A stretch of DNA of 64,000 bases from Hyalangium minutum (GTDB lineage Bacteria > Myxococcota > Myxococcia > Myxococcales > Myxococcaceae): assembly GCF_000737315.1 (NCBI RefSeq), contig NZ_JMCB01000010.1, positions 124,001 to 188,000 on the forward strand, read 5' to 3'. The number at the start of each line of letters is the position of its first letter. Position 1 is the stretch's first letter. A program made the position numbers and the translations under genes. Below, piece by piece: positions 8,403 through 64,000 of the stretch. Below the pieces are notes generated by a model, which was not told the origin of the DNA, searched no databases, and saw only the letters and a list, made by a program, of their open reading frames with translations.

Positions 8403-8419
8403 TTCCCCTCCCTATGACT

Positions 8420-9421
8420 CTATCGACCGGCAGGAAGCTCGAGCACGGTCAGCAGTCCGGCCTCAGCGGCCGTTAAACGTGGCGCGGCATTCACCAGCGT
8501 ATTCGCGGTGGCCCGGTCACCGGCCACTCCCCCCGGGATCTCGACAACAAGTTTCGGGTCCGCGTCGATCTCGATGCGGTCCTTTGGATCTTCAGCACCC
8601 ACGGCGATGGTCAGCTCCAGGCGTACCCGCTCCTGCTCCTCCTCCAACCCCACCACCGACTGGAAGATGCCCGCCACCCGTCCTTTTCGCACCGGGAACG
8701 CGCCACCGGAGATGTCCTCCTCGGCGAAGACGGGAGCGACCTCTTCCTCATAGTCGTCGCAGTCCATGCCGAGCCCCAGCGCGCACAGCGCCGCGGACTC
8801 CACCAGTCCCACGTGCCCCAGCTGGTCCTTATCCACCAGCGCGAAGAACTCGTCCTCCGTCAGCCCCGCGCCCACCTTGCGCTGCAGGGCCTCACGGCGC
8901 GTGCGCGCATCCACCACCCGCGTCACCGTGACACGGCGAACGGGGCCACAGACCTGCCCCACGGTGGCCACCAGGCGATCCATGATGAAGCCCGGATTGA
9001 CGCCCGTGCCCAGCACCGCCACGCCCGCCTTCTGCGCGGCGCGCTCCAGCTTCGCGGCCAGCTCTGGGTGCTTGAGGAAGGGGAACGCGAGCTCCTCGCA
9101 GGTGGAGACCACGCCCACGCCGAGCTTCACCGCGTCGAGGATCTGATCCATCACCTGCGGCAGCCGGGAGCCCGTGGCATGCAGCAGCACCACGCCCTTG
9201 CGCCGGCCCAGCGCGCGCTCGAGCGAGTCCGCCACCTTGAGCTTGGACGTGGGCTGCCCCAACACCTCGGCCAATGGCTGCCCCACGAGCTGCGGGCTGG
9301 TGTCCACCGCGCCAATCAGCTCCACCTCGGGAGAGGCCAGCGCTGCACGCGCGATCTCTTGCCCGATGAACCCAAGCCCCATCACCACCACCGGGACCGG
9401 CCCTGCGGCGGCTCTAGCCAT
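8420..9421 (-). CDS. NAD(P)-dependent dehydrogenase, DapB-like / 2,4-diaminopentanoate dehydrogenase-like
   Basis: Rossmann GLGFIG, STCEEL, GTGVNPGF, GGVAGDRATA. Confidence 0.85.
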   Translation of the reverse strand: MARAAAGPVPVVVMGLGFIGQEIARAALASPEVELIGAVDTSPQLVGQPLAEVLGQPTSKLKVADSLERALGRRKGVVLLHATGSRLPQVMDQILDAVKLGVGVVSTCEELAFPFLKHPELAAKLERAAQKAGVAVLGTGVNPGFIMDRLVATVGQVCGPVRRVTVTRVVDARTRREALQRKVGAGLTEDEFFALVDKDQLGHVGLVESAALCALGLGMDCDDYEEEVAPVFAEEDISGGAFPVRKGRVAGIFQSVVGLEEEQERVRLELTIAVGAEDPKDRIEIDADPKLVVEIPGGVAGDRATANTLVNAAPRLTAAEAGLLTVLELPAGR

Positions 9422-9671
9422 TGGAGAACTCTCCAGAAATTCAAGGGGTTACACGCATTTACAGCACTGCCGCGCACCATAAACCACCCCCCACCAGACA
9501 GGCAAGCATGACTTGGGTGTCAAGGAGGTGTGGCGCTGGGTAATTTCCAGGAATTTCCTGCACTTGGGAACCTGGACTGAAGTCTGAGGTGGTGCAGGCC
9601 CCCCCTATATGGGGGGAACTGAAGGCGTGTATAACAGCTCTCCAAGCTTTGCCGTTGGAGACCTCAGACCC

Positions 9672-10766
9672 ATGGACCGCATCCTCGTGGTGGATGACGA
9701 CGTGCGCATCCTTGCCGCGCTCTCCCGAATCTTCCAGTCCGAGGGCTACGAGGTCGTCACCCACAACGATCCCTCTCTGGCCGCTCGCGAGGAAGGGTTT
9801 CAGGTGGTGCTGACGGACTTCATGATGCCGTACCTCAACGGCATCGAGTTGCTGGCCGCCCTGCGGGAGAAGAACCCGCGCGCGGTACGGCTCATGCTCA
9901 CGGCGGCGGCGGACTTCCGTACGGCCTCGGAGGCGGTGAACCGCGGCGAGGTGTTCCGGCTGCTGGGCAAGCCGTGGTCGCTGTCGGACCTGACGAGCAG
10001 CGTGCGGCAGGCCTTCGAGCACTACAGGCTGGTGGAGGCCAACGAGCGGCTGACGCGCGAGGTGGCCGAGAAGAACGCGGAGCTGCTGGCCATCAACCGG
10101 GACCTGGAGCGTCTGGTGGTGGAGCGGACCACGGGCCTGCTGGATGGGCTCATCAGCGCGCTGGACTACCGGGACACGGAGACGCAGTGGCACTCGCGGC
10201 GCGTGTCCCTGTATGCGCGGCGGCTGGCCGAGGAGATCGGCCTGCAGGGCGCGGCCCTGGACGTGATTGAGCAGGGCGCGTTGCTGCACGACATCGGGAA
10301 GATTGGCGTGAAGGACTCCATCCTGCTCAAGCCGGGGCCGTTGACCCCTGATGAGTGGGAGGAGATGCGGAAGCACCCGGAGTTCGGATACCGGATGCTG
10401 GCGAAGATGCCCTACCTGTACGACGCCTCCCTGATCGTCATGCAGCACCAGGAGCGCTGGGACGGCAAGGGCTACCCGAAGAAGCTGTCCGGCGAGTCCA
10501 TCGTGATTGGCGCGCGCATCTTCGCCATCGTGGACACGCTGGACGCCATCACCTCGGACCGGCCGTACCGCAAGGGCCGGGACCTCCAGGTGGCCCGGGA
10601 TGAGATTGCCCGGTGCTCGGGCACCCAGTTCGATCCGGCTCTGGCGCAGGCGTTCCTGCGCGTCCCGGAATCGGAGTGGCTGCGCATCCGCCACCAGGTG
10701 GAGGCCATGGAAGCCGAGGAGATGCAGCGCTTCGGCCACCTGCCCCACCCGCTCGCCGTGGCGTAG
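9672..10766 (+). CDS. Response regulator with HD-GYP phosphodiesterase (RpfG-like)
   Basis: REC domain (ILVVDDD, LTDFMMP, LGKPW) plus LHDIGKIG and HQERWDGKGYP, DAITSDRPYRK. Confidence 0.95.
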   Translation: MDRILVVDDDVRILAALSRIFQSEGYEVVTHNDPSLAAREEGFQVVLTDFMMPYLNGIELLAALREKNPRAVRLMLTAAADFRTASEAVNRGEVFRLLGKPWSLSDLTSSVRQAFEHYRLVEANERLTREVAEKNAELLAINRDLERLVVERTTGLLDGLISALDYRDTETQWHSRRVSLYARRLAEEIGLQGAALDVIEQGALLHDIGKIGVKDSILLKPGPLTPDEWEEMRKHPEFGYRMLAKMPYLYDASLIVMQHQERWDGKGYPKKLSGESIVIGARIFAIVDTLDAITSDRPYRKGRDLQVARDEIARCSGTQFDPALAQAFLRVPESEWLRIRHQVEAMEAEEMQRFGHLPHPLAVA

Positions 10767-14322: not shown

Positions 14323-14367
14323 AAATCCGCCCTCTCGCGCGGCCGCCGGACTACCGTCTCCGCCGCG

Positions 14368-15303
14368 ATGCCCAGCGATACTCCCCTGTCCCGGCTCACC
14401 GCGGCGCTCAGCGCCACGGTGGTAGGCCAACCCCACGTCATCGCCGATCTGGTGACGGCCTTCCTCGCCCGCGGCCATGTGCTGCTGGAGGGCGTGCCCG
14501 GCGTGGCGAAGACGTTGATCGCCCGCAGCATGGCCTCCGCGCTCGGGCTGCAGTTCACCCGCGTCCAGTTCACCCCGGACCTGATGCCGACCGACATCCT
14601 CGGCACCAACGTCTTTCACCCCGCGGAGAACGCCTTCCGCCTGGTGCGAGGCCCGGTGTTCACCGAGGTGCTCGTCGCGGACGAGATCAACCGCACCCCT
14701 CCCAAGACGCAGGCGGCGCTGCTCGAGGCCATGGAGGAGCGCCAGGTCACCATCGACGGCATCACCCATCCGCTGCCGCCGCACTTCTTCGTGGTGGCCA
14801 CGCAGAACCCCCTGGAGCTGGAGGGCACCTACCCGCTCCCGGAGGCTCAGCTCGATCGCTTCCTGATGCGCGTGCGTGTGAGCTACCCGGATTCGGACGC
14901 GGAGGTGGCCATGCTGCGCGGCTTCCACCAGCGCGAGGGCAAGCCCGCCACGGTGGAGCGCGTGCTGGAGGTGCCCACGCTCATGGAGTTGCAGACCCGC
15001 GCGGCCCGCGTCACGTGCGATGAGTCCATCCTGGCCTACGTGGTGAAGCTCGCCCGGGAGACGCGGGCGCATCCTCGGGTGCGCCTGGGGGCTTCTCCGC
15101 GCTCGGCGCAGGCGGTGCTGGCTGCCGCGAAGGCCCGTGCGGCCCTGCAGGGCGCGGACTTCGTCACCCCGGACGAGGTGAAGGCCGTGGTGCCCAGCGT
15201 GCTCAATCACCGGCTCCTGCTCAAGGCCGAGGCCGAGGTGGAGGGCGTGACGACGGACGACGTGCTGCGGCAGACGCTCGAGCAGGTGAAGGTCCCCCGG
15301 TGA
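14368..15303 (+). CDS. MoxR family AAA+ ATPase
   Basis: GHVLLEGVPGVAKT, RVQFTPDLMPTD, ADEINRTPPKTQAALLEAMEE, ATQNPLE, LDRF. Confidence 0.96.
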   Translation: MPSDTPLSRLTAALSATVVGQPHVIADLVTAFLARGHVLLEGVPGVAKTLIARSMASALGLQFTRVQFTPDLMPTDILGTNVFHPAENAFRLVRGPVFTEVLVADEINRTPPKTQAALLEAMEERQVTIDGITHPLPPHFFVVATQNPLELEGTYPLPEAQLDRFLMRVRVSYPDSDAEVAMLRGFHQREGKPATVERVLEVPTLMELQTRAARVTCDESILAYVVKLARETRAHPRVRLGASPRSAQAVLAAAKARAALQGADFVTPDEVKAVVPSVLNHRLLLKAEAEVEGVTTDDVLRQTLEQVKVPR

Positions 15304-39903: not shown

Positions 39904-40980
39904 ATGCGTCAAGGAATCCGGAAGGTGGGCCGTCGGCTCCTGACCGGCAGCGTCTGTCTCCTGCTGGCGTTGGCCGCCCGGCCCGCCCAGGCGCTCACCC
40001 TCAGCACCGAACTGGGCGCCAGCAAGGACTACCGGGCGCTGACGCTGCTGGGCGACGTGGAGCTGCGCGAGAACACGACGTTTCTCACCTTCGGCTACAG
40101 CGGCGTGCGCCCCGGGCCGGACACCGCCCTCACTCACCAGCTCTCCCTCGGCTTCGACCACGCCCTCTCCGACCACTGGATGCTGTCCGGCTCCGTCGTC
40201 GCCGGGCTGCCCAAGAACACCTTCACCCCGCTGGCCCGGGAGTTTCCTCGGCTCGGGCTGCCATCGCTGGGCGCGCGGACGTCCTACAACAGCCAAGGGC
40301 TCGCCCTCTCGGTGGGTTATGACTCCGCGGGGCTCTCGGACGTGGAGTACGGGCTGGACGCGGGGCTGAACCTCACCCGCTATCCCCTGCGACGGGCGCT
40401 CATCACCAAGGAAACGGGCCAGGAGGCTCGAACCGTCTTCCACCAAGAGGAGAAGCTGGGCGTGTTCCGGCCCTCGCTGGGGGGGCGGCTGCTGCTGGGG
40501 AGCTGGGAGCTGGGCCTGCGCGGCGGCCTCTACCTTTATAGTGACGATCCCCTGAGCACCGGCCAGTTCTCCGAGGAGGAGCAGCAGGCGCTGGCCGCCC
40601 GCTATGCCCAGGTGGGCGAGGATCGCCAGCTCCAGCGCCTCTTCGCCGAGAAGCTCTACCGGGACATCGGCACGGCCGTGGCGGGCCGGCTGTCGGACGC
40701 GAACTTCTCGGCGGGCCTGCCCAGCGCCCCGGCGCGCTTCGACGTGAGGCCCTCGGTCACCTACCGCTTCAACGCCACCGTCCGGGGGCAGCTCTCCTAC
40801 GCCTTCACCCAGTACGTGCCGGGCCAGGGCATGAGCCACCTGCTGGCCACCCGGTGGACCGTCCGCCTGGGCGAGCCTGTCCGGCTGTGGGCCTCCGTCG
40901 CCCTGCAGGCAGACATGCCCGAGGAGGCAGGCACCGTCTCCACCGGGCTTGCCACTTTGGGCGCCGAGTACACCTTCTGA
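39904..40980 (+). CDS. Outer-membrane beta-barrel-like hypothetical protein
   Basis: Signal peptide, alternating amphipathic strands, C-terminal GAEYTF. Confidence 0.75.
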   Translation: MRQGIRKVGRRLLTGSVCLLLALAARPAQALTLSTELGASKDYRALTLLGDVELRENTTFLTFGYSGVRPGPDTALTHQLSLGFDHALSDHWMLSGSVVAGLPKNTFTPLAREFPRLGLPSLGARTSYNSQGLALSVGYDSAGLSDVEYGLDAGLNLTRYPLRRALITKETGQEARTVFHQEEKLGVFRPSLGGRLLLGSWELGLRGGLYLYSDDPLSTGQFSEEEQQALAARYAQVGEDRQLQRLFAEKLYRDIGTAVAGRLSDANFSAGLPSAPARFDVRPSVTYRFNATVRGQLSYAFTQYVPGQGMSHLLATRWTVRLGEPVRLWASVALQADMPEEAGTVSTGLATLGAEYTF

Positions 40981-41011
40981 ATGCCCGGGCGGCCGTAGTA
41001 AAACCCCGGCC

Positions 41012-42283
41012 ATGCATCGATCAGCCATCGCCGCCGCGCTCCTCCTCCTGACCGCGTGCGAGCCCGTGCCGCAGGATCCAGTGAGGGTCCGCGCGCTCGT
41101 GCTCTCCGGAAACGGGAGCTACGTGACTCAGGAAGTCACCCTCAACACCATCACCGACATCATCCACATGGAGGGGAGTGTCGCGAAGCTGATCGGCGGG
41201 GCCCGCATCGTCCTGGACTCCGCGGATCCGGAGCTGCAGGTGCCCACGCTGACGGAGGAGGGCTTCGCCAACGCGCTGATCAAGTCCGATGGCCGGCCCG
41301 TCACCGCCAACTGGATCGAGCAGGACGGGGTGCTGTGGCCGGCGGACTTCCACACCTGGAACCTGGCCACCACCTATTACAACTTCGAGAAGGCCCGCGA
41401 GTACTTCAACACCGTGGGCAACATCCCCCAGGCGGACTTCGGCAAGGATCCCGCCACCGTCTACTACTTCGCGGACTTCACCCTGAAGGACTCCAACCCG
41501 GAGCCCATCAAGGACAACGCGCTGTGGTTCGCTCCCACGCAGTCCTTCATGGTGGTGCCCTTCGACGAGCTGCAGAAGGCGCCGCTGGCCATCAACTCCG
41601 GCGTCATGGCGCATGAGTACTCGCACATGATCTTCAACCTGAAGGTGTACGGCTCGCGCCGGCTGCCTCCGCCCATCACCGAGTGGGGCGCGGTGGGCAC
41701 CAGCCCGGGCGCCAACCTCATCAAGGCGCTGGACGAGGGCCTCGCGGACTACCACGGCTACGGCGTCACCTGTAAGAGCGCCACCGGCTGCGATCCGCGC
41801 TTCCTGCGCACCTCGTTCGAGGACAAGCTGAGCAACGATCGCGATCTGTCCAAGTCGGACCGGTGCATGGACCTCGGCCTGCGCAACTCGCTGCAGAACT
41901 CGGGCCTCGGCACGTTCTCGGGCCAGGGGCTGGAGTACAAGCTGGGCTCCATCCTCGCCAGCGCGCTCTACCAGGCCGGCGAGAGCACCGGGCAGCGCGA
42001 GGTGCTCATGCGCGCCATCGTCTCCGCCTACTCGGACGAGACGGCCAACAACCCTGGCCTCAAGCAGCTCATCAGCCTCGTCGGGAGCAACCAGACCGAC
42101 TTCAACCTCACCTCCGTGTCCGCGGTGTTCATCAAGCACGTCACGGACGTGCCGCTGAAGACGGCGCTGTGCAACGAGCTGATCGATCACCTGCAGGTCC
42201 CCGCCGCCGATCTGGTGGGCCCGGGCCTGCCCTGCCCCGCCGCGGCGCAGGGCGGCAACACCTGCACCCGGATCAATCCATGA
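41012..42283 (+). CDS. Lipoprotein with gluzincin-like metallopeptidase motifs
   Basis: Lipobox LTAC; VMAHEYSHMIF (HExxH) and a downstream LDEGLADY. Confidence 0.8.
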   Translation: MHRSAIAAALLLLTACEPVPQDPVRVRALVLSGNGSYVTQEVTLNTITDIIHMEGSVAKLIGGARIVLDSADPELQVPTLTEEGFANALIKSDGRPVTANWIEQDGVLWPADFHTWNLATTYYNFEKAREYFNTVGNIPQADFGKDPATVYYFADFTLKDSNPEPIKDNALWFAPTQSFMVVPFDELQKAPLAINSGVMAHEYSHMIFNLKVYGSRRLPPPITEWGAVGTSPGANLIKALDEGLADYHGYGVTCKSATGCDPRFLRTSFEDKLSNDRDLSKSDRCMDLGLRNSLQNSGLGTFSGQGLEYKLGSILASALYQAGESTGQREVLMRAIVSAYSDETANNPGLKQLISLVGSNQTDFNLTSVSAVFIKHVTDVPLKTALCNELIDHLQVPAADLVGPGLPCPAAAQGGNTCTRINP

Positions 42284-56475: not shown

Positions 56476-56742
56476 ACCTGACAGAGCGGCATGACGCCAG
56501 CCTACTCGTTGGGTAGGCTGCGCACGGGCGGATCTGGCCGCCCCATCACGCCGAGTTACGCGATGACGGACACCCCCTCCCCCGCCTCTCTCATGCCTGG
56601 GGCTCTCGTCGGCCCCTGGCGAATCAAGGGCTATGCCGGCCGTGGCTCCTATGGCCTGGTCTTCCGGGCCCGGCTCGCCGCACAGCCCGACTCGCCTCCA
56701 GCGGCGTTGAAGATGGCCGTCTTCCCGGAGACCCGCGCTTCC
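56476..56742 (+). repeat. Direct repeat copy 1 (copy 2 at 57750-58017)
   Basis: About 267 bp; by eye 7 substitutions and a 1-nt deletion relative to copy 2. Confidence 0.95.
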
Positions 56743-56780
56743 ATCAAGAGGCCACCTTCCTTCAGGATCTTGAAGTGGAC
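56563..56780 (+). pseudogene. Truncated, frameshifted Ser/Thr kinase 5' fragment
   Basis: MTDTPSPASLMPGALVGPWRIKGYAGRGSYGLVFRA...ALKM, then a 1-nt deletion (CTTCCC-GGAG vs CTTCCCAGGAG). The rest of the catalytic domain is absent. Confidence 0.85.
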
Positions 56781-56900
56781 CCGGGGCGGTAGCCAATGGA
56801 GTTGCACCCAAACGCATGTCGTCAAATGGCTGGGGAGTGATGCGCTAGAGGCTCCTGCCGTCATGGAAGAAAATGCCCCTTGCCTCTCGATGGATGCACC

Positions 56901-57587
56901 ATGAGAACGCTTCTGCCAGTTCTGACCGGTCTTCTCCTTGTCACGTGTGTCAGGAGTCCGGTTCCTCGCCCGCTCCCCCCGTATGCTCCATCCATTAAAT
57001 TCCCGCATGCGTTGAGGTCCCCCGGGCTGCTGCTCGGTCAATCCGAGCAGCGGGTGCGAATGGATGGCGCGATCGTCCAGGCCATGATGATTGCCGCCAA
57101 GGACTTCATCCCGTCACCCTCCGAGCAGTTCCCCTGCTGGACGAAGCCGGAGCACTTTCTTTTCGACGTCATTCGCAAAGGGGACATCATCTTCGTTTCG
57201 ATCTCCCCAGATTACTTTGCTCAAGGGTGTGAGCGATACACCGCGCCGTTGGACTGGGGGGCCAAGTACGCCATCAGCACCGATGGCCGCATCCTCACGC
57301 AGGAAGATGGCTCCGATGATGGGCCCGAATGGGAATCTCCACCCTCATCCCCGGATGCTGGCACGGATGACCACGCAGCCCATCGCCGAGTATACAATCT
57401 CAGCGATCTCGACCGCATGGACTCGGCACCCGTGGAGGACCCGCCGTTTTTTACGCGTCCAGAGTGGCAGGCCCAGCACCCCTGGCCTCCGTCGCGCAAG
57501 CCTCGCACACCCGCGTTGCCCGATGGAGGAACGCCCGATGGAGGCGTTCACTCGGATGGCGGCTCCCCAGCAGTTCCTCCCCGATAA
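56901..57587 (+). CDS. Hypothetical lipoprotein
   Basis: MRTLLPVLTGLLLVTC lipobox-like; Pro/Asp/Gly-rich tail. Confidence 0.75.
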   Translation: MRTLLPVLTGLLLVTCVRSPVPRPLPPYAPSIKFPHALRSPGLLLGQSEQRVRMDGAIVQAMMIAAKDFIPSPSEQFPCWTKPEHFLFDVIRKGDIIFVSISPDYFAQGCERYTAPLDWGAKYAISTDGRILTQEDGSDDGPEWESPPSSPDAGTDDHAAHRRVYNLSDLDRMDSAPVEDPPFFTRPEWQAQHPWPPSRKPRTPALPDGGTPDGGVHSDGGSPAVPPR

Positions 57588-57749: not shown

Positions 57750-58017
57750 ACCTGACAGAGCGGCATGACGCCAGCCTACTCGTTGGGTAGGCTGCGCGAG
57801 GGCGGATCTGGCCGCCCCATCACGCCGAGTTACGCGATGACGGACACCCCCTCCCCCGCCTCTCTCATGCCTGGGGCTCTCGTCGGCCCCTGGCGCATCG
57901 AGGGCTATGCCGGCCGTGGCTCCTATGGCCTGGTCTTCCGGGCCCGGCTCGCCGCACAGCCCGACTCGCCTCCAGTGGCGCTGAAGGTGGCCGTCTTCCC
58001 AGGAGACCCGCGCTTCC
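57750..58017 (+). repeat. Direct repeat copy 2 (5' UTR and start of the intact kinase)
   Basis: See copy 1. Both copies include the palindrome CAGCCTAC-TCGTTGG-GTAGGCTG. Confidence 0.95.
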
Positions 58018-59306
58018 GTCGCGAAGCCACCTTGTTGGAGAAACTCCAGCATTCGTCGGTGCCTCGGCTCCTGGACCAGGGGGAGTGGCATGCTTCGGCC
58101 GACGCCGTTCACCCGTACATCGCCATGCAGTGGATTCACGGCCTGCCGCTATACGAGTGGGCACGCCACCATCCGGTCTCTCCGCGTCAGGCACTCCTGG
58201 TCGTGGCCCAGATAGCCGATGCCCTGGCGCTGTTGCACCAGATGGAAGGCCTGCACCGTGACCTCAAAGGCGACAACATCCTGGTTGACGCTCAAGGCCG
58301 AGCGGTGCTCATCGACTTCGGATCGGGCACTTGGAAAGGGGCGCCGCCTCTGACGCAGAGCCTGATGCCCCCCAACACGCCAGAGTACCGCAGTCCTCAG
58401 GCGCTGCGCTTCCACTGGAAGCACTGGGACACCCTCGAGGCTCGCTACGAGCCGACAGCGGCCGACGACCTGTATGCGCTGGGCGTCACCGCCTACAAAT
58501 TGGTGACGCGCGTCTATCCGCCTCCGGGAACGAGTCCGGAGGACATCAAGCAGCGGCTGCAGACACCGCCTCCCCGGCGTCTGCCCGCGCAGGCGCTCAA
58601 CAGCCGCGTGGGGCCGGAGTTCTCCGCACTCATCGAGCGCATGTTGGCGGAAGTTCCCCAGCAACGTGCTTCCTCACGAGAAGTAGCAGAGGAAGGGATG
58701 ACCACCGCCCGGCAGCTGGGCTCCAGCGCCAACGCTCCGCTCTTCACCGTGGACCGGCCCACTGCTGCAGTTCCCTGCGTGCTCGCTCCCGTTGTGCCAG
58801 CAACCCACTTGGAGCGGCCCACCGCTGCCGCTCCGCCGGCTGCTCCTGCCCGAGCACATATCGAATCCCCAGAGTTCCCTGTGGGCTTGCGCTCCGCGTT
58901 GGCCCCAATCTTGGTGCTCCTCACAGCGCTCAGCGTCGTATGGGTGAGCCATGCTGATCGCCCTGCGTGGCTCACGCCCCTGGAGGAACAGTCAGATGGA
59001 GGGGTTGCTCCGGACGGGGGAACACGCGGACTGGGAGAGGACGCGCTGGCCTCTCGGGTGGATGCCCAGCAAGCCCCTCTGGTCGCCAGGGTCATCTCCG
59101 AAAATCTGCTCAAACAGCCGCTGCCTGGGCAACGCAAGCCTCCTTGCCGCGGTGAAGACGTGGAAGTGATTCATGGGGCCTGCTGGATACTCCGGAAGGG
59201 AGTTCGCCCTCCCTGCGGCGATGATGGGTATCTGTGGCAAGGCGCGTGCTACGTCCCCTTGCTCGGCAACGCGCGAACGCCGACCACCGACAAGCCACAG
59301 CAGTAG
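57837..59306 (+). CDS. Hanks-type Ser/Thr protein kinase with TM helix and Cys-rich extracellular tail
   Basis: GRGSYGLV, VALKV, HRDLKGDNILV, DFG, DDLYALGV; C-terminal PLPGQRKPPC...CW...PPC...W.G.CYVP. Confidence 0.93.
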   Translation: MTDTPSPASLMPGALVGPWRIEGYAGRGSYGLVFRARLAAQPDSPPVALKVAVFPGDPRFRREATLLEKLQHSSVPRLLDQGEWHASADAVHPYIAMQWIHGLPLYEWARHHPVSPRQALLVVAQIADALALLHQMEGLHRDLKGDNILVDAQGRAVLIDFGSGTWKGAPPLTQSLMPPNTPEYRSPQALRFHWKHWDTLEARYEPTAADDLYALGVTAYKLVTRVYPPPGTSPEDIKQRLQTPPPRRLPAQALNSRVGPEFSALIERMLAEVPQQRASSREVAEEGMTTARQLGSSANAPLFTVDRPTAAVPCVLAPVVPATHLERPTAAAPPAAPARAHIESPEFPVGLRSALAPILVLLTALSVVWVSHADRPAWLTPLEEQSDGGVAPDGGTRGLGEDALASRVDAQQAPLVARVISENLLKQPLPGQRKPPCRGEDVEVIHGACWILRKGVRPPCGDDGYLWQGACYVPLLGNARTPTTDKPQQ

Positions 59307-59403: not shown

Positions 59404-60324
59404 CTATTGGCAGAGCCTGCGCATCCAGCGGCGCAACGGTTCTTTGTCGAGAGAGAACCAGCCGGTGCGCTCCTCTAAGAAGAAGGGCTCGAGCAGCAGC
59501 GCCAACTCGCGATATTGGGCCGGGTAGAACTTCTTCTCAGTGTCGATGGTCTCAGGCCACTCGGTGAGGGTGATCAGCAGGCGATCGCCGTCGAGGGGCT
59601 GGAAGGAGACATCCGGGAAGGGGAGCTTCTGGTGCAGGGCCTCGGGGCCACCGAGCTGGCCGAGCAGGGGCTGGCCCAGGAAGGTAAGCCAGTAGGCGCC
59701 TCGGGCACGGGTGCCGATGACCCGGCTCGTGTCTTCGAGGTGGTAGAGATCCAGGCCCAGGTAGCGAGAGAGGAGTGGGAGGAGCTCCCAGCGGGCGGCG
59801 TACCACATGCCATGGGGAGAGATGACGGCGAGGCTGGCGTAGCCGAAGCTGAAGGGCAGCTCGCGTGCGAGTTCCAGGACCAGGGTGCGCAGATGGCCTG
59901 GGCCGCGCTCCATGAGGTACTCGGTGGGAAAGGTAAAAGACACCCCACTGGTCCAACTCTCGTCGTGAGAGAAGTTCGGATCATCGAGCTGCCGGCCCCG
60001 GTACTCGAAGTGGTAACCGCCCACTTCGCTCGCATCCTCCTCGAGATCGACATAGCAGGCGGCAGCCCCCTTGCGCTCAAGGATTTGCCAGCGGATGTGC
60101 GCCCAGCCCTTGTCATCGAGCGGGAGGGTGTCGCCATCGTCCGAGCCGTACCAAGCCAGCGACTGTGGGGGGGTGGCACGGCGGTAAGCCTGCAGGGCCC
60201 GCCACACGGCGGGGGCCACCTCGTGGTGTGAGCTGCGCATGAAGAAGCAGAGAACGACGCCATCGCGGGCCACCGACCTGCCGTACTTGCTCCGCAGGCG
60301 GATGACGGGAATGCTCTCCCTCAT
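59404..60324 (-). CDS. DUF3396 (TsiV-like) immunity protein
   Basis: LCFFM, SFTFPTEYL, LPFSFGYASL, RGAYWLTFLGQPLLGQLGG, W.RR pattern. ATGA overlap with the upstream gene. Confidence 0.8.
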   Translation of the reverse strand: MRESIPVIRLRSKYGRSVARDGVVLCFFMRSSHHEVAPAVWRALQAYRRATPPQSLAWYGSDDGDTLPLDDKGWAHIRWQILERKGAAACYVDLEEDASEVGGYHFEYRGRQLDDPNFSHDESWTSGVSFTFPTEYLMERGPGHLRTLVLELARELPFSFGYASLAVISPHGMWYAARWELLPLLSRYLGLDLYHLEDTSRVIGTRARGAYWLTFLGQPLLGQLGGPEALHQKLPFPDVSFQPLDGDRLLITLTEWPETIDTEKKFYPAQYRELALLLEPFFLEERTGWFSLDKEPLRRWMRRLCQ

Positions 60325-61145
60325 CGAGCCATGCCCCCTTGTGGCGAAATAATCCAGGCTTCCCCCCCAAGCGCCTCCTTGTAGATTTCACCCTGGGTGC
60401 GGCCGAAATAGGCGCTGTCCTCTCGATAACGCGTCCATCGCGGCTCATTGGTCTCAGGACAGGGAAACTTGAAGTCCAGGGTGAGTACGGACCGCAGCAA
60501 GCTGCTGCGGTCGACATGAAGGACGATGTCAGGCTCGATGGTGCGCCACAGTTCACGGGTGCAGCCTTGAGCGATCAGGCGCGCCACCTCTTGCTTGCTG
60601 ACGGGCTCGAGGAACTTCGCGTTGGGGTAGTAGCGGTAGCGCTGCTGGATGCTGAAGGGGGCAGGCCAGAGCTGCTCAAGCACCTGCTGAGCGCATTGGA
60701 AGGCAACGGTATGTTTCAGCTCTCCCAGGTACATGGCGCGGGAGATGGGGACGGCGCAGCCGTCGGCGAACACCTCCTCGCCGCACTCTTGGCGGGTGGG
60801 GGAGCGGTTGCCGAAGAACTGGGAGTTGACCTGGCGCTCGGCCAGCCTGGCGCACTCGACGAGCTGTTCCTCGAGCTCACCTACTGCGTTGTCGTTCTCA
60901 AGCAAGGCAAGCAGTGCGGGGACAGACCGGCCGAGGATGGAGGCTACGGCCGCAGTGGTGGTGGGGGCTGCGGAGCTCCCCCCCGCGATGACGGCGGAGG
61001 CATGGGTCATCTTTGCGGCCGTCTCCGAGTCGAGGCGCAAGTCCCTGCGCGAGGAGCGTTGGGGGGTGGCACAGGCTGCGAGGACAGCACAGGCCATCCA
61101 CAGGTGTACGAGCGTCCAGCGCACGGTTCGGCGGGAGCGGAGCAT
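60321..61145 (-). CDS. Lipoprotein with PD-(D/E)xK (VRR-NUC/TseV-like) nuclease motif; putative toxin
   Basis: Lipobox VLAAC; IEPDIVLH...LDFKFPC; Q...Y..ALG tail; coupled to the DUF3396-like gene. Confidence 0.75.
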   Translation of the reverse strand: MLRSRRTVRWTLVHLWMACAVLAACATPQRSSRRDLRLDSETAAKMTHASAVIAGGSSAAPTTTAAVASILGRSVPALLALLENDNAVGELEEQLVECARLAERQVNSQFFGNRSPTRQECGEEVFADGCAVPISRAMYLGELKHTVAFQCAQQVLEQLWPAPFSIQQRYRYYPNAKFLEPVSKQEVARLIAQGCTRELWRTIEPDIVLHVDRSSLLRSVLTLDFKFPCPETNEPRWTRYREDSAYFGRTQGEIYKEALGGEAWIISPQGGMAR

Positions 61146-61323: not shown

Positions 61324-63783
61324 TTACCTGCGCTTTTTCCGGCGGATTTTCCCCTCGTGCGGACTTTCGGGGGGCGCCTCGGGAAGGCTCGGAAGGTCCA
61401 GTTCTGGAAGACTGGAGATGTCATCCAAGGGAAGGCTGAGCTGGTACTGCTCCCCTTCGAGCTCCAGCTCCGCGTAAGCTGTGATGGAACCGAACGAGGC
61501 ACTCACGAAGAAGTCCGCGATCGCCCGTCCATGGGTTGAGCGCACGGTCTTCTGAATTTCGGGAGTCAGCAGGAAGCGCACGGACTGGGGGAGCGGCGCT
61601 CTCTTCGCGTCGTGGGATTGAAGGACGAGCCGGATGCCTCTCTTCTCGGTCGCACCCAGCCTCCACCCCACCAGTTCCCACGGCCGCCCCCGTGTCCGAT
61701 CCCGATGCTCACGCGGCATCCGGGCAATCAGGTTGGGATGGAGCACTCGCTTGTAGAGCGGCGTGCGAAGCACATACGCGTCGGGCTTCGTCCGGCAAAT
61801 GAGTCCCTGCCCCATGAGAAGCGGTGCATACTCGTGGCTGAGAGCCAACGAGTATCCCTTGCCGAGTTCCTGCAGAACCTCTGTCACCACAGGGGCTTGC
61901 TCACTGAGCCACTGACGAACCCTGGCCATCTCCGGATCGAAGATCCGAAACCACGCTTCACTCTCGAAGCGCATGAGATCCTCCAGGGACCACTCCTGCT
62001 GGCGTGCGCCCTGGAGCGCCATCTCCGCCAGGTGGAGACTTCCTCCCGTCCAGAGGAGGAACTCCTGCACTCCCTCCTCCGAGAGCCGCACTCCGTACAT
62101 CCTGCGGAGAGACAGCACCTCTTGCTCATCCAGGTCCCCAAGCCTCACTTCATCCGCATGGGGAGAGCGAGGCGTATCTGGCCGACATGCAAGTAAGAGA
62201 CGGGCCCCACTGTTTGTGAGGTCTTCCTGCAGGGAAAGAATCGTCATGGGGTTCAGCGCAAGCGTAAGAGGGGGCTGCTCGCCCGGCATCCTCCAAGCAT
62301 GAAGCCGATGAAAGTTGCAGATACCCACAACGACCATCGTCTCGGGCAGCCTGCTCCTCCCCTCCTGCTCCACCCGTTTGATACGGGACGCGAAGAACTT
62401 CAGAAAGTCATGCGGATCCAGTTCCTGGGGGAGCCGTGAGGGAACATCGAACAGGAAGAACTGCATGGGCACATTGTGTCGCTCCCCGTGCAGCCCAACG
62501 CTCCTCAAGAGCGTGGCACTGGCCTGGCCGTGGTAGCCCACCACATGAAGGATGGGCACGTTCGCACTGATGAGGCGGTCGAGAATGACTCGAGCCTCCT
62601 TCCGCTCGATGGAGAGCGGAGGAAGCGAGAGTTCCAAGGGTTGTATCGCATCAAGAAGCAGGTGCTGGTGATCCCTTCCCTCCACTGCGCCGCGAGCCAG
62701 GAGAATCTCCCAGGTCTTCTCGAACTTCTCGAAGCTCCGCCGGGCCATTCTCCGCAAGAGAGTTCTCGGAAAGTCCCCCTCTGTCTCGCGCCAAGCCTGC
62801 GTCACGAGCTGATCAATGACCTGAGCGCCGAAGTGCTGGCGCAGTTCCCAGAAAACCGCTCCCCAGACCTCCCCAAGTTCCGGAATCGTCGAGTCCCGCC
62901 GCTGAGCGAACCTCAACCGGTTGTCTAGGTGCCGGAACGGTGTCGGGTAGCCAGGAAGCTCGGCCTCTTTGACGCCAAAACGCGGGTCATTCTTGTAACT
63001 GCACACCAGATAGTCCGCGAGACCGGACTCCACAGCGGCAAGCGTCTCGGTGGTCCCCAGCGACTCGGGCATCAGGACATGATGCGCGTACTGGCGCAGC
63101 AGGGTGTCCTCCAAGAGGAGGCTGCCGTACATCAGCGGAGGCCCAAGCTCACGACGGTCGAACCAGGTGATCTCTGGACTGTCGAACCAGAAGACCCCTG
63201 GATTGTCGGTGGAGCCATGAACCAGGAGCGGTGCAATCCCGCCCTCCAAGATTCCATTCCGGACGAGGTACTTTTGGAAGTCCGCCACGACCTTCCGGAT
63301 CCGCTTGCGCAGGTCCTGCGAGATGGTGTCCTCGAAGATCAGACCGGCGTCTGGGACCTCTGAAGGCTCGTCCGGCGCCTGAGTCCTGATCGGAATCTGC
63401 AGGGTGGGCAGTTCGACAGGGGCGGGCTTGGCTGCGATCTCGATGTCTCGCAGCACCACCGTGTGGACCGTCATCCCATGACGGTTCACGAAGTGGAGGG
63501 TGATCGTTCCTTTCTGGAGCGGATCCTTCGCCGTGAGCAGGAAGGCCGCCGGGCCGTAGCTGCCTCCAAAGCGGTGCAGCACGATGCTCTGGTCCCCCAG
63601 AGGCTCATGCGTAAAGAGCGAGGTATTGATGAGACAGGTGAGCGCCAGTTCCTCCTGTCCGTAGGGCCACCTCTCCGGTGGGTGCCGGTGCTGCAGGTCC
63701 ACCGTGAGGTAGTGACGCTCCCCGGGCCGGGCCGTCCGCGGGTAGGAGACCACCGGCTCGATGGAGATGGGCTCGCTAGCCAT
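61324..63783 (-). CDS. Multidomain protein: beta-rich N-domain + degenerate M4/M36-like peptidase + degenerate AAA/STAND + pYEATS-like domain
   Basis: RQYAHHVL / ESGLADY / GEVWGAVFWELR; GYHGQASAT, LGDLDEQEV...WTGGSLHL; SVRFLLTPEI...SFGSITAYAE. Confidence 0.8.
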   Translation of the reverse strand: MASEPISIEPVVSYPRTARPGERHYLTVDLQHRHPPERWPYGQEELALTCLINTSLFTHEPLGDQSIVLHRFGGSYGPAAFLLTAKDPLQKGTITLHFVNRHGMTVHTVVLRDIEIAAKPAPVELPTLQIPIRTQAPDEPSEVPDAGLIFEDTISQDLRKRIRKVVADFQKYLVRNGILEGGIAPLLVHGSTDNPGVFWFDSPEITWFDRRELGPPLMYGSLLLEDTLLRQYAHHVLMPESLGTTETLAAVESGLADYLVCSYKNDPRFGVKEAELPGYPTPFRHLDNRLRFAQRRDSTIPELGEVWGAVFWELRQHFGAQVIDQLVTQAWRETEGDFPRTLLRRMARRSFEKFEKTWEILLARGAVEGRDHQHLLLDAIQPLELSLPPLSIERKEARVILDRLISANVPILHVVGYHGQASATLLRSVGLHGERHNVPMQFFLFDVPSRLPQELDPHDFLKFFASRIKRVEQEGRSRLPETMVVVGICNFHRLHAWRMPGEQPPLTLALNPMTILSLQEDLTNSGARLLLACRPDTPRSPHADEVRLGDLDEQEVLSLRRMYGVRLSEEGVQEFLLWTGGSLHLAEMALQGARQQEWSLEDLMRFESEAWFRIFDPEMARVRQWLSEQAPVVTEVLQELGKGYSLALSHEYAPLLMGQGLICRTKPDAYVLRTPLYKRVLHPNLIARMPREHRDRTRGRPWELVGWRLGATEKRGIRLVLQSHDAKRAPLPQSVRFLLTPEIQKTVRSTHGRAIADFFVSASFGSITAYAELELEGEQYQLSLPLDDISSLPELDLPSLPEAPPESPHEGKIRRKKRR

Positions 63784-64000
63784 TCGAGCCTCCCGCAGGC
63801 TCCAGCTTCAGGTAGGCCTCCGGCGTCCCATAGAAGACGTACATGAACTTGTACACGTAGGCTCGCCGAGACGCATTGTCACTCGCGTCCAGCTTCTCGA
63901 AGGCCTCCTTGCGCACCTGGCGCAGCAGTTCTGGAATGCAGACCCCGTCCTTCCCCTTGGCCGCCTCCAGAATGCGCGCGCCGATGGCGGCCGCGATGCT
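63776..64000 (-). CDS. C-terminal end of a probable CHAT (caspase-like) domain protein, 5'-truncated by the window edge
   Basis: Absent from the track. Manual translation SIAAAIGARILEAAKGKDGVCIPELLRQVRKEAFEKLDASDNASRRAYVYKFMYVFYGTPEAYLKLEPAGGSNG* resembles the CHAT C-terminal (R....Y.lYG.P) signature. 8-bp overlap with the next ATG. Confidence 0.6.
   Translation of the reverse strand, partial: SIAAAIGARILEAAKGKDGVCIPELLRQVRKEAFEKLDASDNASRRAYVYKFMYVFYGTPEAYLKLEPAGGSNG

Follow-up and report, generated by a model that had tools for sequence, protein, structure and literature searches.

What is a CHAT-like protease gene doing beside a gene for a protein built of apparently dead enzyme domains? 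The question arises at the end of a stretch of 64,000 nucleotides (nt) of Hyalangium minutum DNA (contig NZ_JMCB01000010.1, positions 124,001 to 188,000; "the window"), where the 3′ end of such a protease gene overlaps the start of a gene for a protein of 819 amino acids (aa). The initial annotation of the window took these two genes for a self-contained pair. They are instead the 3′ end of a five-gene operon, and the conserved unit is larger than the pair: a ChlI-like AAA+ ATPase, a ChlD-like protein with a domain of the von Willebrand factor A (vWA) type, the CHAT protease and a protein that starts with a constant domain (hereafter the N-domain), with a membrane protein added in myxobacteria. 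The best explanation, to which we assign a probability of about 0.55, is that an ATP-driven switch acts together with cleavage or activation of an N-domain-tagged payload by the CHAT protease, in a conflict or programmed-death role.

The 819-aa protein is encoded on the minus strand at 61324..63783, stop codon included, and its product was matched exactly on contig JMCB01000010.1 of assembly GCA_000737315.1; its nearest named homologues come from Hyalangium gracile. The last 74 codons and the TAG stop of the upstream gene occupy 63776..64000 on the same strand. The two reading frames share 8 bp (ATGGCTAG, 63776..63783, minus strand), which hold the TAG of the protease gene and the ATG of the 819-aa gene, so that the frame and the overlap are both as first read, and the two genes are probably translationally coupled. 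Scans with Pfam, NCBIfam and PADLOC returned for the 819-aa protein a sub-threshold match to AAA_35 alone and for the 74-aa fragment no match. A promoter/terminator scan 3′ of the 819-aa gene found none.

The upstream gene encodes a CHAT protease, as had been suspected from its tail, and the protein carries a His/Cys dyad. This assignment becomes solid only with the full gene of 533 aa, which lies at 8407-10008 of the locus (L001) on the parent contig and whose coding sequence begins outside the window. The 74 residues inside the window match a family hidden Markov model (HMM) of the CHAT domain with E = 5.5e-32 and contain no catalytic residue; the dyad itself, ASHG His383 and NAC Cys423, was found beyond the window edge, together with three more cassette genes, and is invariant in 7 homologues. 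Neither the protein nor its nearest cluster representative (P0014) gives a direct Pfam CHAT match, and among seven family members Pfam recognizes, weakly, CHAT in two (best E 1.4e-4) and Peptidase_C14 in three. The family profile, on the other hand, leads to full-length relatives that carry PF12770 (E 1e-77 to 1e-87), and a Pfam-recognized CHAT protein from a cyanobacterial-looking contig (L014; see below) aligns with residues 237-529 (E 1e-23). The same family profile found nothing significant among PDB sequences, and Foldseek with the AlphaFold2 (AF2) model matched the N-terminal beta-sandwich only, as a generic Ig-like fold.

Ahead of the 819-aa gene stand four genes that run in the same direction and for the most part overlap, in the order membrane protein, ChlI-like AAA+, ChlD-like and CHAT. 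The first encodes a 734-aa protein of no family with hydrophobic segments at residues 7-25, 262-280 and 666-694, a layout of signal peptide, beta-rich outer part, transmembrane (TM) segment, long helical cytoplasmic part and C-terminal hydrophobic segment. The second encodes a 330-aa AAA+ ATPase with intact Walker A and Walker B motifs, whose best match is the BchI/ChlI model TIGR02030 (274 bits, against a cut-off of 467) and which also matches AAA_5 and AAA_lid_2. The 641-aa product of the third matches the BchD/ChlD model TIGR02031 over residues 61-625 (E 4e-30; 105 bits, against a cut-off of 500) and consists of a degenerate AAA domain, a Pro-rich linker and a vWA domain at the C-terminal end.

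In magnesium chelatase, the I/D motor acts on the H subunit. No H subunit or tetrapyrrole genes lie near this locus, and the H subunit is absent from all loci examined. We rejected genes 2 and 3 as a true Mg-chelatase on this ground and on their scores, which are far below the equivalog cut-offs; the labels "magnesium chelatase" and "AAA-like domain" on cassette genes are misleading.

A neighborhood survey, which the initial annotation had suggested as a check, was made with the N-domain alignment as query in one genome per species (185,579 species) and gave 198 confirmed loci. These belong to cyanobacteria, Chloroflexota (Ktedonobacteria, Caldilineae, Herpetosiphon), Streptomyces and other actinomycetes, myxobacteria, Beggiatoa-like bacteria, Acidobacteriota and a few others. 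The cassette species, about 200 in number, are mostly filamentous or social, a bias that was judged qualitatively. Detailed counts were taken from the best 80 of the 198 loci with HMMs built from genes of the type found here. In 79 of the 80, the N-domain gene is immediately preceded by CHAT, the exception being a contig of 1.3 kb, and the ChlD-like and AAA+ genes follow upstream wherever the flank allows. The P-loop is kept in 66/68 ATPases and the Walker B DE in 68/68, and the aligned CHAT sequences keep the catalytic His in 68/74 and the Cys in 68/71. The CHAT stop overlaps the N-domain start by 4 nt in 39 of 79 loci and by 8 nt in 15; the 8-bp overlap seen here recurs in L002, L004, L006, L008, L009 and L012. 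The membrane protein was found in 2 of the 80 loci. AAA+, ChlD-like protein, CHAT and N-domain protein thus form an obligately linked cassette across phyla.

What changes from locus to locus is the part behind the N-domain. The five-gene arrangement recurs around homologues of the 819-aa protein, with flanks that vary. Around homologues of the CHAT gene, the first four genes are constant and the fifth differs, always starting with an N-domain. In L008, this fifth gene encodes a Roc-COR-TIR-TIR protein, in L011 Metallophos plus Endonuclease_NS, and in L012 Metallophos plus caspase plus M43. In L009 (11574-12710; Myxococcus stipitatus DSM 14675, CP004025), it encodes 378 aa with an N-domain and a helical region weakly matching sigma-70 region 2 (E 2e-4), a fusion that could, judging from its sequence, be a protease-released pro-sigma-like factor.

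Two loci on cyanobacterial-looking contigs were chosen independently of CHAT. One (L013) reads AAA+, a 646-aa protein, a PNP_UDP_1+CHAT-like protein and an N-domain-NB-ARC protein; the other (L014) reads Trypco1, AAA+, a 635-aa protein, CHAT and an N-domain-S51 protein. Their ATPases (53-55% identity) and ~640-aa proteins (37-39%) are orthologous to genes 2 and 3 along the full length; across phyla, the identities are 51-55% for the ATPase and 37-40% for the ChlD-like protein. L013, on metagenome contig Ga0672992_0001519, has AbiEi/AbiEii, SIR2-STAND and PNP-SEFIR-TIR-FGE genes as neighbors and resembles a defense island. Over all loci, the payload repertoire takes in nSTAND1, NACHT, NB-ARC, TPR, FGE-sulfatase, Metallophos, caspase, CHAT, EAD1, TIR, Endonuclease_NS, S51, M43 and sigma70_r2, a set comparable to the domains of described conflict systems (Kaur, Burroughs, Iyer & Aravind 2020/2021; PMC7159879, PMC8195603). 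The defense-island-like neighborhood and this repertoire agree with the earlier suggestion of a conflict-type setting in multicellular bacteria.

The contrast between constant core and variable payload was quantified in 58 loci with all parts complete. Mean pairwise identity was 56% for the AAA+ protein, 42% for the ChlD-like protein, 33% for CHAT and 45% for the N-domain, and the N-domain co-varied with the core genes (Spearman 0.62-0.82) as the core genes did among themselves. Payload similarity was undetectable in 89% of locus pairs. Even where the CHAT proteins were more than 55% identical, the payloads were unrelated in 49 of 130 pairs, and in one pair with CHAT 96% and N-domain 88% identical the payloads were unrelated. 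The zincin-like/STAND/beta-sandwich payload of the 819-aa protein occurs in 1 of the 80 loci and in 4 of ~1.8 billion cluster representatives. The N-domain is the element constantly coupled to CHAT, and of the many unrelated payloads the “dead-enzyme” body is a rare one.

The N-domain (residues 1-118; 63430..63783, minus strand) is all-beta and, in an alignment of full-length homologues, far more conserved than the remainder of the protein. Its near-invariant motifs are WPYxxEE (E44 100%, E45 96%) and HRFGGxYG (R71 99%, G73 and Y76 100%). It begins no more than 20 residues from the N-terminus in 112 of 115 matches, and complete N-domain proteins range from 198 to 1,668 aa. The best 150 matches of an exhaustive profile search were mostly N-domain proteins of 100-1400 aa. 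Partial matches that share only this domain include Roc-COR-TIR-TIR (P0008), NACHT-like (P0009), NB-ARC (P0010), cyanophycinase-like (P0011) and helical (P0012) proteins, and 57 N-domain proteins carry nSTAND1, NACHT, NB-ARC, AAA_16, TPR, FGE-sulfatase, Metallophos, Peptidase_C14, CHAT or EAD1. In those 57 proteins the N-domain itself matches no Pfam model, and the Pfam models of effector-associated domains (EADs) do not detect it. Against PDB sequences the N-domain profile gave nothing significant; the best, non-significant match (E 0.79) was to BchI residues 175-223 (1g8p_A; VERDG…F.LVG…G.L…L.DRFGL), a segment that gene 2 also has, and the resemblance of the N-domain to it is probably due to chance.

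Behind the N-domain the 819-aa protein consists of a linker and three further folded modules. The AF2 model (mean predicted local distance difference test [pLDDT] 81) has four folded modules and two disordered stretches, with the N-domain at residues 8-116, the linker at 121-144, an alpha/beta plus helical part at 148-378, the STAND module at 396-690 and the sandwich at 702-786. Orthologues at 39-85% identity keep all four domains. The linker (residues 119-147; 63343..63429, minus strand) is Pro-rich, poorly conserved and disordered (pLDDT 32-34 at 121-144), and it varies in length and sequence among full-length homologues; in this model, it is a candidate cleavage or tether region.

The zincin-like module (residues 148-378; 62650..63342, minus strand) had been read as an M4/M36-like peptidase with a ruined zinc site. 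The residues quoted for it are in the protein, as R230-QYAH-H235 and E252-SGLADY258. The search of ~1.8 billion cluster representatives, with 1,418 matches at E<=1e-3, showed that residues ~150-371 are an independent, widespread module, found elsewhere often behind a TM or coiled-coil N-terminus or joined to TIR, KAP NTPase or RES domains. The family motif is R-E-[YF]-x-H-H … [IV]-E-S-G-L-A-D-Y-x-x-C-S, its halves readable in 30 and 45 of 48 members, and the signature extends to REYxHH … ESGLADYxxCS … GExWGGxFWELR. None of the 48 has HExxH at this site. Among full-length homologues, HEYAH occurs only in P0002 and P0006. Ser stands at the canonical third-ligand Glu position in [IV]ESGLADY, with the Glu shifted by one residue. 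These states are family-wide, so the His-to-Arg change and the Glu shift are conserved signatures and not decay special to this system.

The M4/M36-like reading is only weakly supported. In the AF2 model, a small sheet is followed by two consecutive helices (225-237 and 246-264), each of which bears one of the motifs. Homology is weak: one relative (P0013) matches M36 with E 0.056, and the module has no Pfam model and no significant PDB-sequence match. A protein with intact HEYSH and DEGLADY motifs does lie in the window, at 40949..42283 (plus strand). Comparison with it is at motif level only, since BLASTP found no similarity between it and the 819-aa protein and hhalign, although it aligned REYxHH with HEYSH and ESGLADY with DEGLADY, gave a probability of 20%. 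We regard the module as non-canonical zincin-like; by its sequence features, homology to zincins is plausible but weak. The HEYSH protein itself, a putative lipoprotein of 444 aa, has no Pfam match and no PDB-sequence relative and may be classed as an unclassified putative metallopeptidase.

The STAND module (residues 388-692; 61708..62622, minus strand) comprises a P-loop core, a helical domain and a winged helix. Whole-model Foldseek searches of the 819-aa protein (PDB, BFVD) were dominated by it, with PAB2304 (2qen), Avs3 (8dgc), NRC3 (9ria), CED-4 (2a5y) and Apaf-1 (1z6t) as top PDB matches. AAA_35 was matched in all six full-length homologues scanned (best E 3e-13), and the nearest Pfam models are AAA_35 and nSTAND_NTPase5. 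The reported motifs are present as G416-YHGQASA-T424, a Walker A without Lys, and V484-VVGICNF491, a Walker B without an acidic residue. The Walker A Lys is missing in 7/7 full-length homologues. The window protein, P0002, P0003 and P0004 have lost the Walker B Asp, which the more distant P0005, P0006 and P0007 keep. The reading of an inactive STAND-like domain is borne out by the structural matches, and the sequences of all homologues support well that the domain is predicted to be inactive in every one of them.

The tail had been likened to a degenerate pYEATS domain, which we did not recover: no pYEATS match was obtained with Pfam at E<=10 in any of six homologues, and the model of the C-terminal domain (residues 698-790; 61414..61692, minus strand) is a generic beta-sandwich of seven strands (pLDDT about 90) to which no family was assigned. 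By hhalign, this sandwich showed no relation to the N-domain or to the CHAT N-terminal domain. The protein ends in a disordered tail (residues 798-819; 61327..61392, minus strand; pLDDT below 50) closing with KIRRKKRR, and every orthologue has 7-12 Lys and Arg in its last 30 residues. Two relatives extend this architecture: in P0005 (L006:4367-8014) the window-type payload is followed at the C terminus by a HerA/FtsK-like ATPase whose P-loop appears intact, and in P0006, where HEYAH is intact, three WD40 repeats separate the zincin-like module from the STAND module.

How might these parts work together? By analogy with the I/D motor of Mg-chelatase and with MoxR-vWA pairs, the ChlI/ChlD-like AAA+/vWA pair would be an ATP-dependent switch that captures or remodels the N-domain or the protease; such a role has been proposed for the MoxR-vWA pairs (PMC7159879). 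As a speculation, the invariant acidic pair of the N-domain (E44/E45) might serve as a ligand of the vWA metal site. CHAT would then cleave the N-domain protein in or beside this handle, and the payload would be released or activated. The disordered linker and the start/stop overlaps fit stoichiometric co-production of protease and substrate. Bacillus subtilis pro-sigmaE and pro-sigmaK are activated by removal of an N-terminal pro-sequence, and the sigma-like payload of L009 recalls such pro-sigma factors and fits the cleavage model. In the 819-aa protein, the payload lacks canonical catalytic sites and has a basic tail, which suggests that it probably works not through catalysis but by binding nucleic acid or a membrane and assembling there. 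The membrane protein of the myxobacterial subtype would probably provide an envelope-derived trigger, and biologically the system most likely serves signaling in conflict or programmed death.

A number of points weigh against this cleavage model. We infer every mechanistic step in it. The linker has no conserved cleavage-site motif, and the invariant motifs lie only inside the folded N-domain. The metal-ion-dependent adhesion site (MIDAS) of the gene 3 vWA domain is only partly canonical (D-x-T), and the AF2 model of gene 4 (pLDDT 44 in the CHAT region) is too poor to confirm a caspase-hemoglobinase fold. PADLOC gave no match for genes 1-4 or for the L014 genes beyond generic AAA noise, and the defense role is taken from context. 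Since only the best 80 of the 198 loci were counted, divergent N-domains without the cassette could exist. Finally, many payloads are sensor-like (STAND, TPR, FGE-sulfatase), and recruitment fits these as well as release does.

In the recruitment alternative, which resembles an apoptosome, the N-domain would be an adaptor of CARD or EAD type; the payload would sense, oligomerize and cluster N-domains, CHAT would thereby be activated as the true effector on cellular targets, and the AAA+/vWA pair would set a threshold or reset the system. The N-domain does occupy the effector/adaptor position of many STAND proteins (nSTAND1, NACHT or NB-ARC with TPR or FGE-sulfatase sensors), and the window payload holds a STAND module of oligomerization type. 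An hhalign comparison of the N-domain with the N-terminal beta-domain of a myxobacterial CHAT protein gave a probability of 65% (E 6e-5), which would fit homotypic pairing on the EAD principle (PMC8195603). This result concerns one subtype, however: in L013 the CHAT N-terminal region consists of a PNP_UDP_1 (nucleoside phosphorylase-like) domain, and in L014 it is short, so that a homotypic partner for the N-domain is not general. In addition, the STAND module here appears from its motifs unable to bind or hydrolyze NTP normally, and a sensing oligomer is not needed by the many payloads that are simple effectors or regulators (Endonuclease_NS, TIR, S51, M43, sigma-like). We consider recruitment unlikely, though it survives better than any other rival to the cleavage model.

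The two-gene proposal of the initial annotation, in which CHAT and the 819-aa protein are self-contained and the pseudo-enzyme domains serve as a decoy, a sensor or a scaffold to be cleaved, was right about the identity of CHAT, the tight coupling and a STAND domain that looks dead in all homologues. A sensor or receptor role has been proposed for inactive STANDs (PMC8195603, PMC12839542), and iSTAND modules of MoxR-vWA systems and BREX have been proposed as sensors (PMC7159879, PMC12839542). Yet CHAT and the N-domain protein were never alone where flanks were available, the ATPase pair being always there. The pseudo-enzyme body is rare and freely replaced, also by active enzymes, so it is not the defining partner of CHAT, and the proposal is improbable.

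Somewhat more improbable still is a housekeeping function, in which a chelatase-like or CoxD/E-like chaperone set and a maturation protease would assemble or mature an envelope protein or one that bears a cofactor. The closest matches of genes 2 and 3 are indeed the I and D subunits of Mg/Co-chelatases, MoxR-vWA pairs have many maturation roles (PMC7159879), and the myxobacterial subtype has a membrane partner. Against this stand the low profile scores and missing H subunit and tetrapyrrole genes described above, the extreme payload turnover over a constant core, payloads typical of immunity and death (TIR, NLR-like STAND, nucleases, caspases), the patchy distribution and the different flanks in every locus. 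A last reading, in which the 819-aa gene is in decay, much like a pseudogene, and owes its odd motifs to neutral erosion, is largely refuted: the E231-to-Q change is a minority state (shared with P0049 and P0078) and the Walker B Asp kept in distant homologues is lost here, but the 2.46-kb frame is intact, the orthologues retain the four-domain architecture, the model is of good pLDDT, the N-domain is nearly invariant and the motif states are family-wide.

Among known systems, the MoxR-vWA ternary systems are closest. Like them, the cassette has a MoxR/chelatase-clade AAA+ protein and a vWA protein as constant core, a caspase-superfamily peptidase as signaling component and a small, non-catalytic N-terminal domain that couples hypervariable effectors (TIR, STAND, TPR, FGE-sulfatase, calcineurin-like, nucleases, peptidases); both are concentrated in filamentous or social bacteria, and some of the ternary systems have an inactive STAND. 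The pair here, unlike theirs, is of ChlI/ChlD type, with a degenerate AAA domain N-terminal to the vWA, and not CoxD/CoxE-derived, and there is no vWA-L. The third constant part is a stand-alone CHAT and not VMAP, iSTAND, FtsH, a propeller, iSTAND2 or TERNS3; no VMAP or other such Pfam model matched the cassette proteins scanned. The ChlD-like protein ends with its vWA, whereas the effectors are on a separate protein behind the all-beta N-domain, and the inactive STAND is a rare payload rather than a constant sensor. Membership in the VMAP or iSTAND ternary type was rejected, the constant third gene being CHAT (79/80) and the dead STAND occurring in 1/80. We rate the cassette as a variant of the MoxR-vWA ternary conflict systems that differs in pair type, third component and effector attachment.

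The likeness to BchI/ChlI and BchD/ChlD of Mg-chelatase extends from the best profiles and the intact Walker motifs of the ATPase to the layout of the D subunit, in which an AAA-like domain at the N-terminal end is followed by an acidic, Pro-rich linker and a C-terminal integrin-I/vWA domain. The difference lies in the low scores, the lack of an H subunit and pigment genes, the partly altered MIDAS and the constant linkage to CHAT and an N-domain protein. CHAT and caspase-like proteases are known to cleave the products of neighboring genes, as in Craspase (TPR-CHAT/Csx30) and in bacterial gasdermin-protease pairs. The cassette resembles these in having a clan-CD protease beside a presumed effector-precursor substrate, with activation that would be gated by an upstream sensor or switch. 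It differs from them in that the gate would be an AAA+/vWA pair and not a CRISPR effector or NLR-like sensor, and in that the presumed substrate is defined by an N-terminal handle common to hundreds of unrelated payloads.

The N-domain also recalls EAD1-12, the bacterial Death-like domains (bDLDs) and Trypco1/2, being small, non-enzymatic and N-terminal on diverse effector and NTPase proteins, and its tight linkage to one peptidase type parallels that of Trypco with trypsin. Most EADs are helical and Death-like, whereas the N-domain is all-beta and far more conserved, and a second, homotypic copy is not clearly present. The STAND module shares with the iSTANDs of MoxR-vWA systems and with BrxB/BrxF of BREX (PMC12839542) the STAND fold, the eroded Walker A and B motifs and, in proposals made for those proteins, non-catalytic sensing or assembly. 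Unlike BrxB-type iSTANDs, it keeps its helical and winged-helix domains and occupies the payload position.

We found no description of the cassette in PADLOC 2.0 or in the searchable literature, outside of which papers are possible; the only trace was the neighbor label "Chelatase-AAA+VWA" in a supplementary table. Nor did we find a Pfam, NCBIfam or PADLOC model for the N-domain or the REYxHH zincin-like module. The early suggestion of an undescribed protease-triggered system thus stands as to novelty; the conserved unit is larger than the pair it named, and the protease trigger is a conjecture about mechanism. Taken together, the cassette may be an unnamed, phylum-spanning immune or cell-death system in which a chelatase-derived motor and CHAT deploy any payload via the N-domain handle, with the REYxHH module as a second new conflict domain; we put this forward tentatively, at slightly less than even odds.

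If this logic holds, a fourth-component-type architecture would be added to the AAA+/vWA conflict systems of multicellular bacteria. There would be a clean, testable rule of one handle, one cognate caspase-like protease and interchangeable payloads, and access to the ATP-switch gating of bacterial caspase-like proteases and to the latency of NLR-like, TIR and nuclease effectors. Such modular, protease-gated delivery would parallel the control of effectors by prodomains in eukaryotic immunity. The cassette shows a motor of chelatase type recruited outside tetrapyrrole metabolism, and its N-domain and the REYxHH module, both unnamed, account between them for hundreds of cluster representatives.

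Three other features of the window were noted. An open reading frame (ORF) for a MoxR/AAA_5-like ATPase at 14323-15300 (plus strand) weakly matches the cassette ATPase HMM (E 2e-7); no CHAT or N-domain gene lies near it, and it thus seems to belong to another system. Next to the 819-aa gene on its downstream side, 59404-61145 (minus strand) holds two ORFs that overlap by 4 nt. One has no family and encodes 274 aa if read from the ATG at 61145 (on the parent contig it is called as 229 aa); the other encodes a protein of the TsiV family (PF11876) with 306 aa. By their sequences, the two may be an effector/immunity-like pair; they are absent from other cassettes and so are probably a separate module. 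Two copies of a 251-nt direct repeat, 97% identical, stand 1,274 nt apart at 56476-56726 and 57750-58000. What they duplicate is the 5′ end of a Ser/Thr kinase gene (57765-59306), and since the upstream copy heads only a 137-codon ORF (56491-56904), this copy is probably a truncated duplicate.

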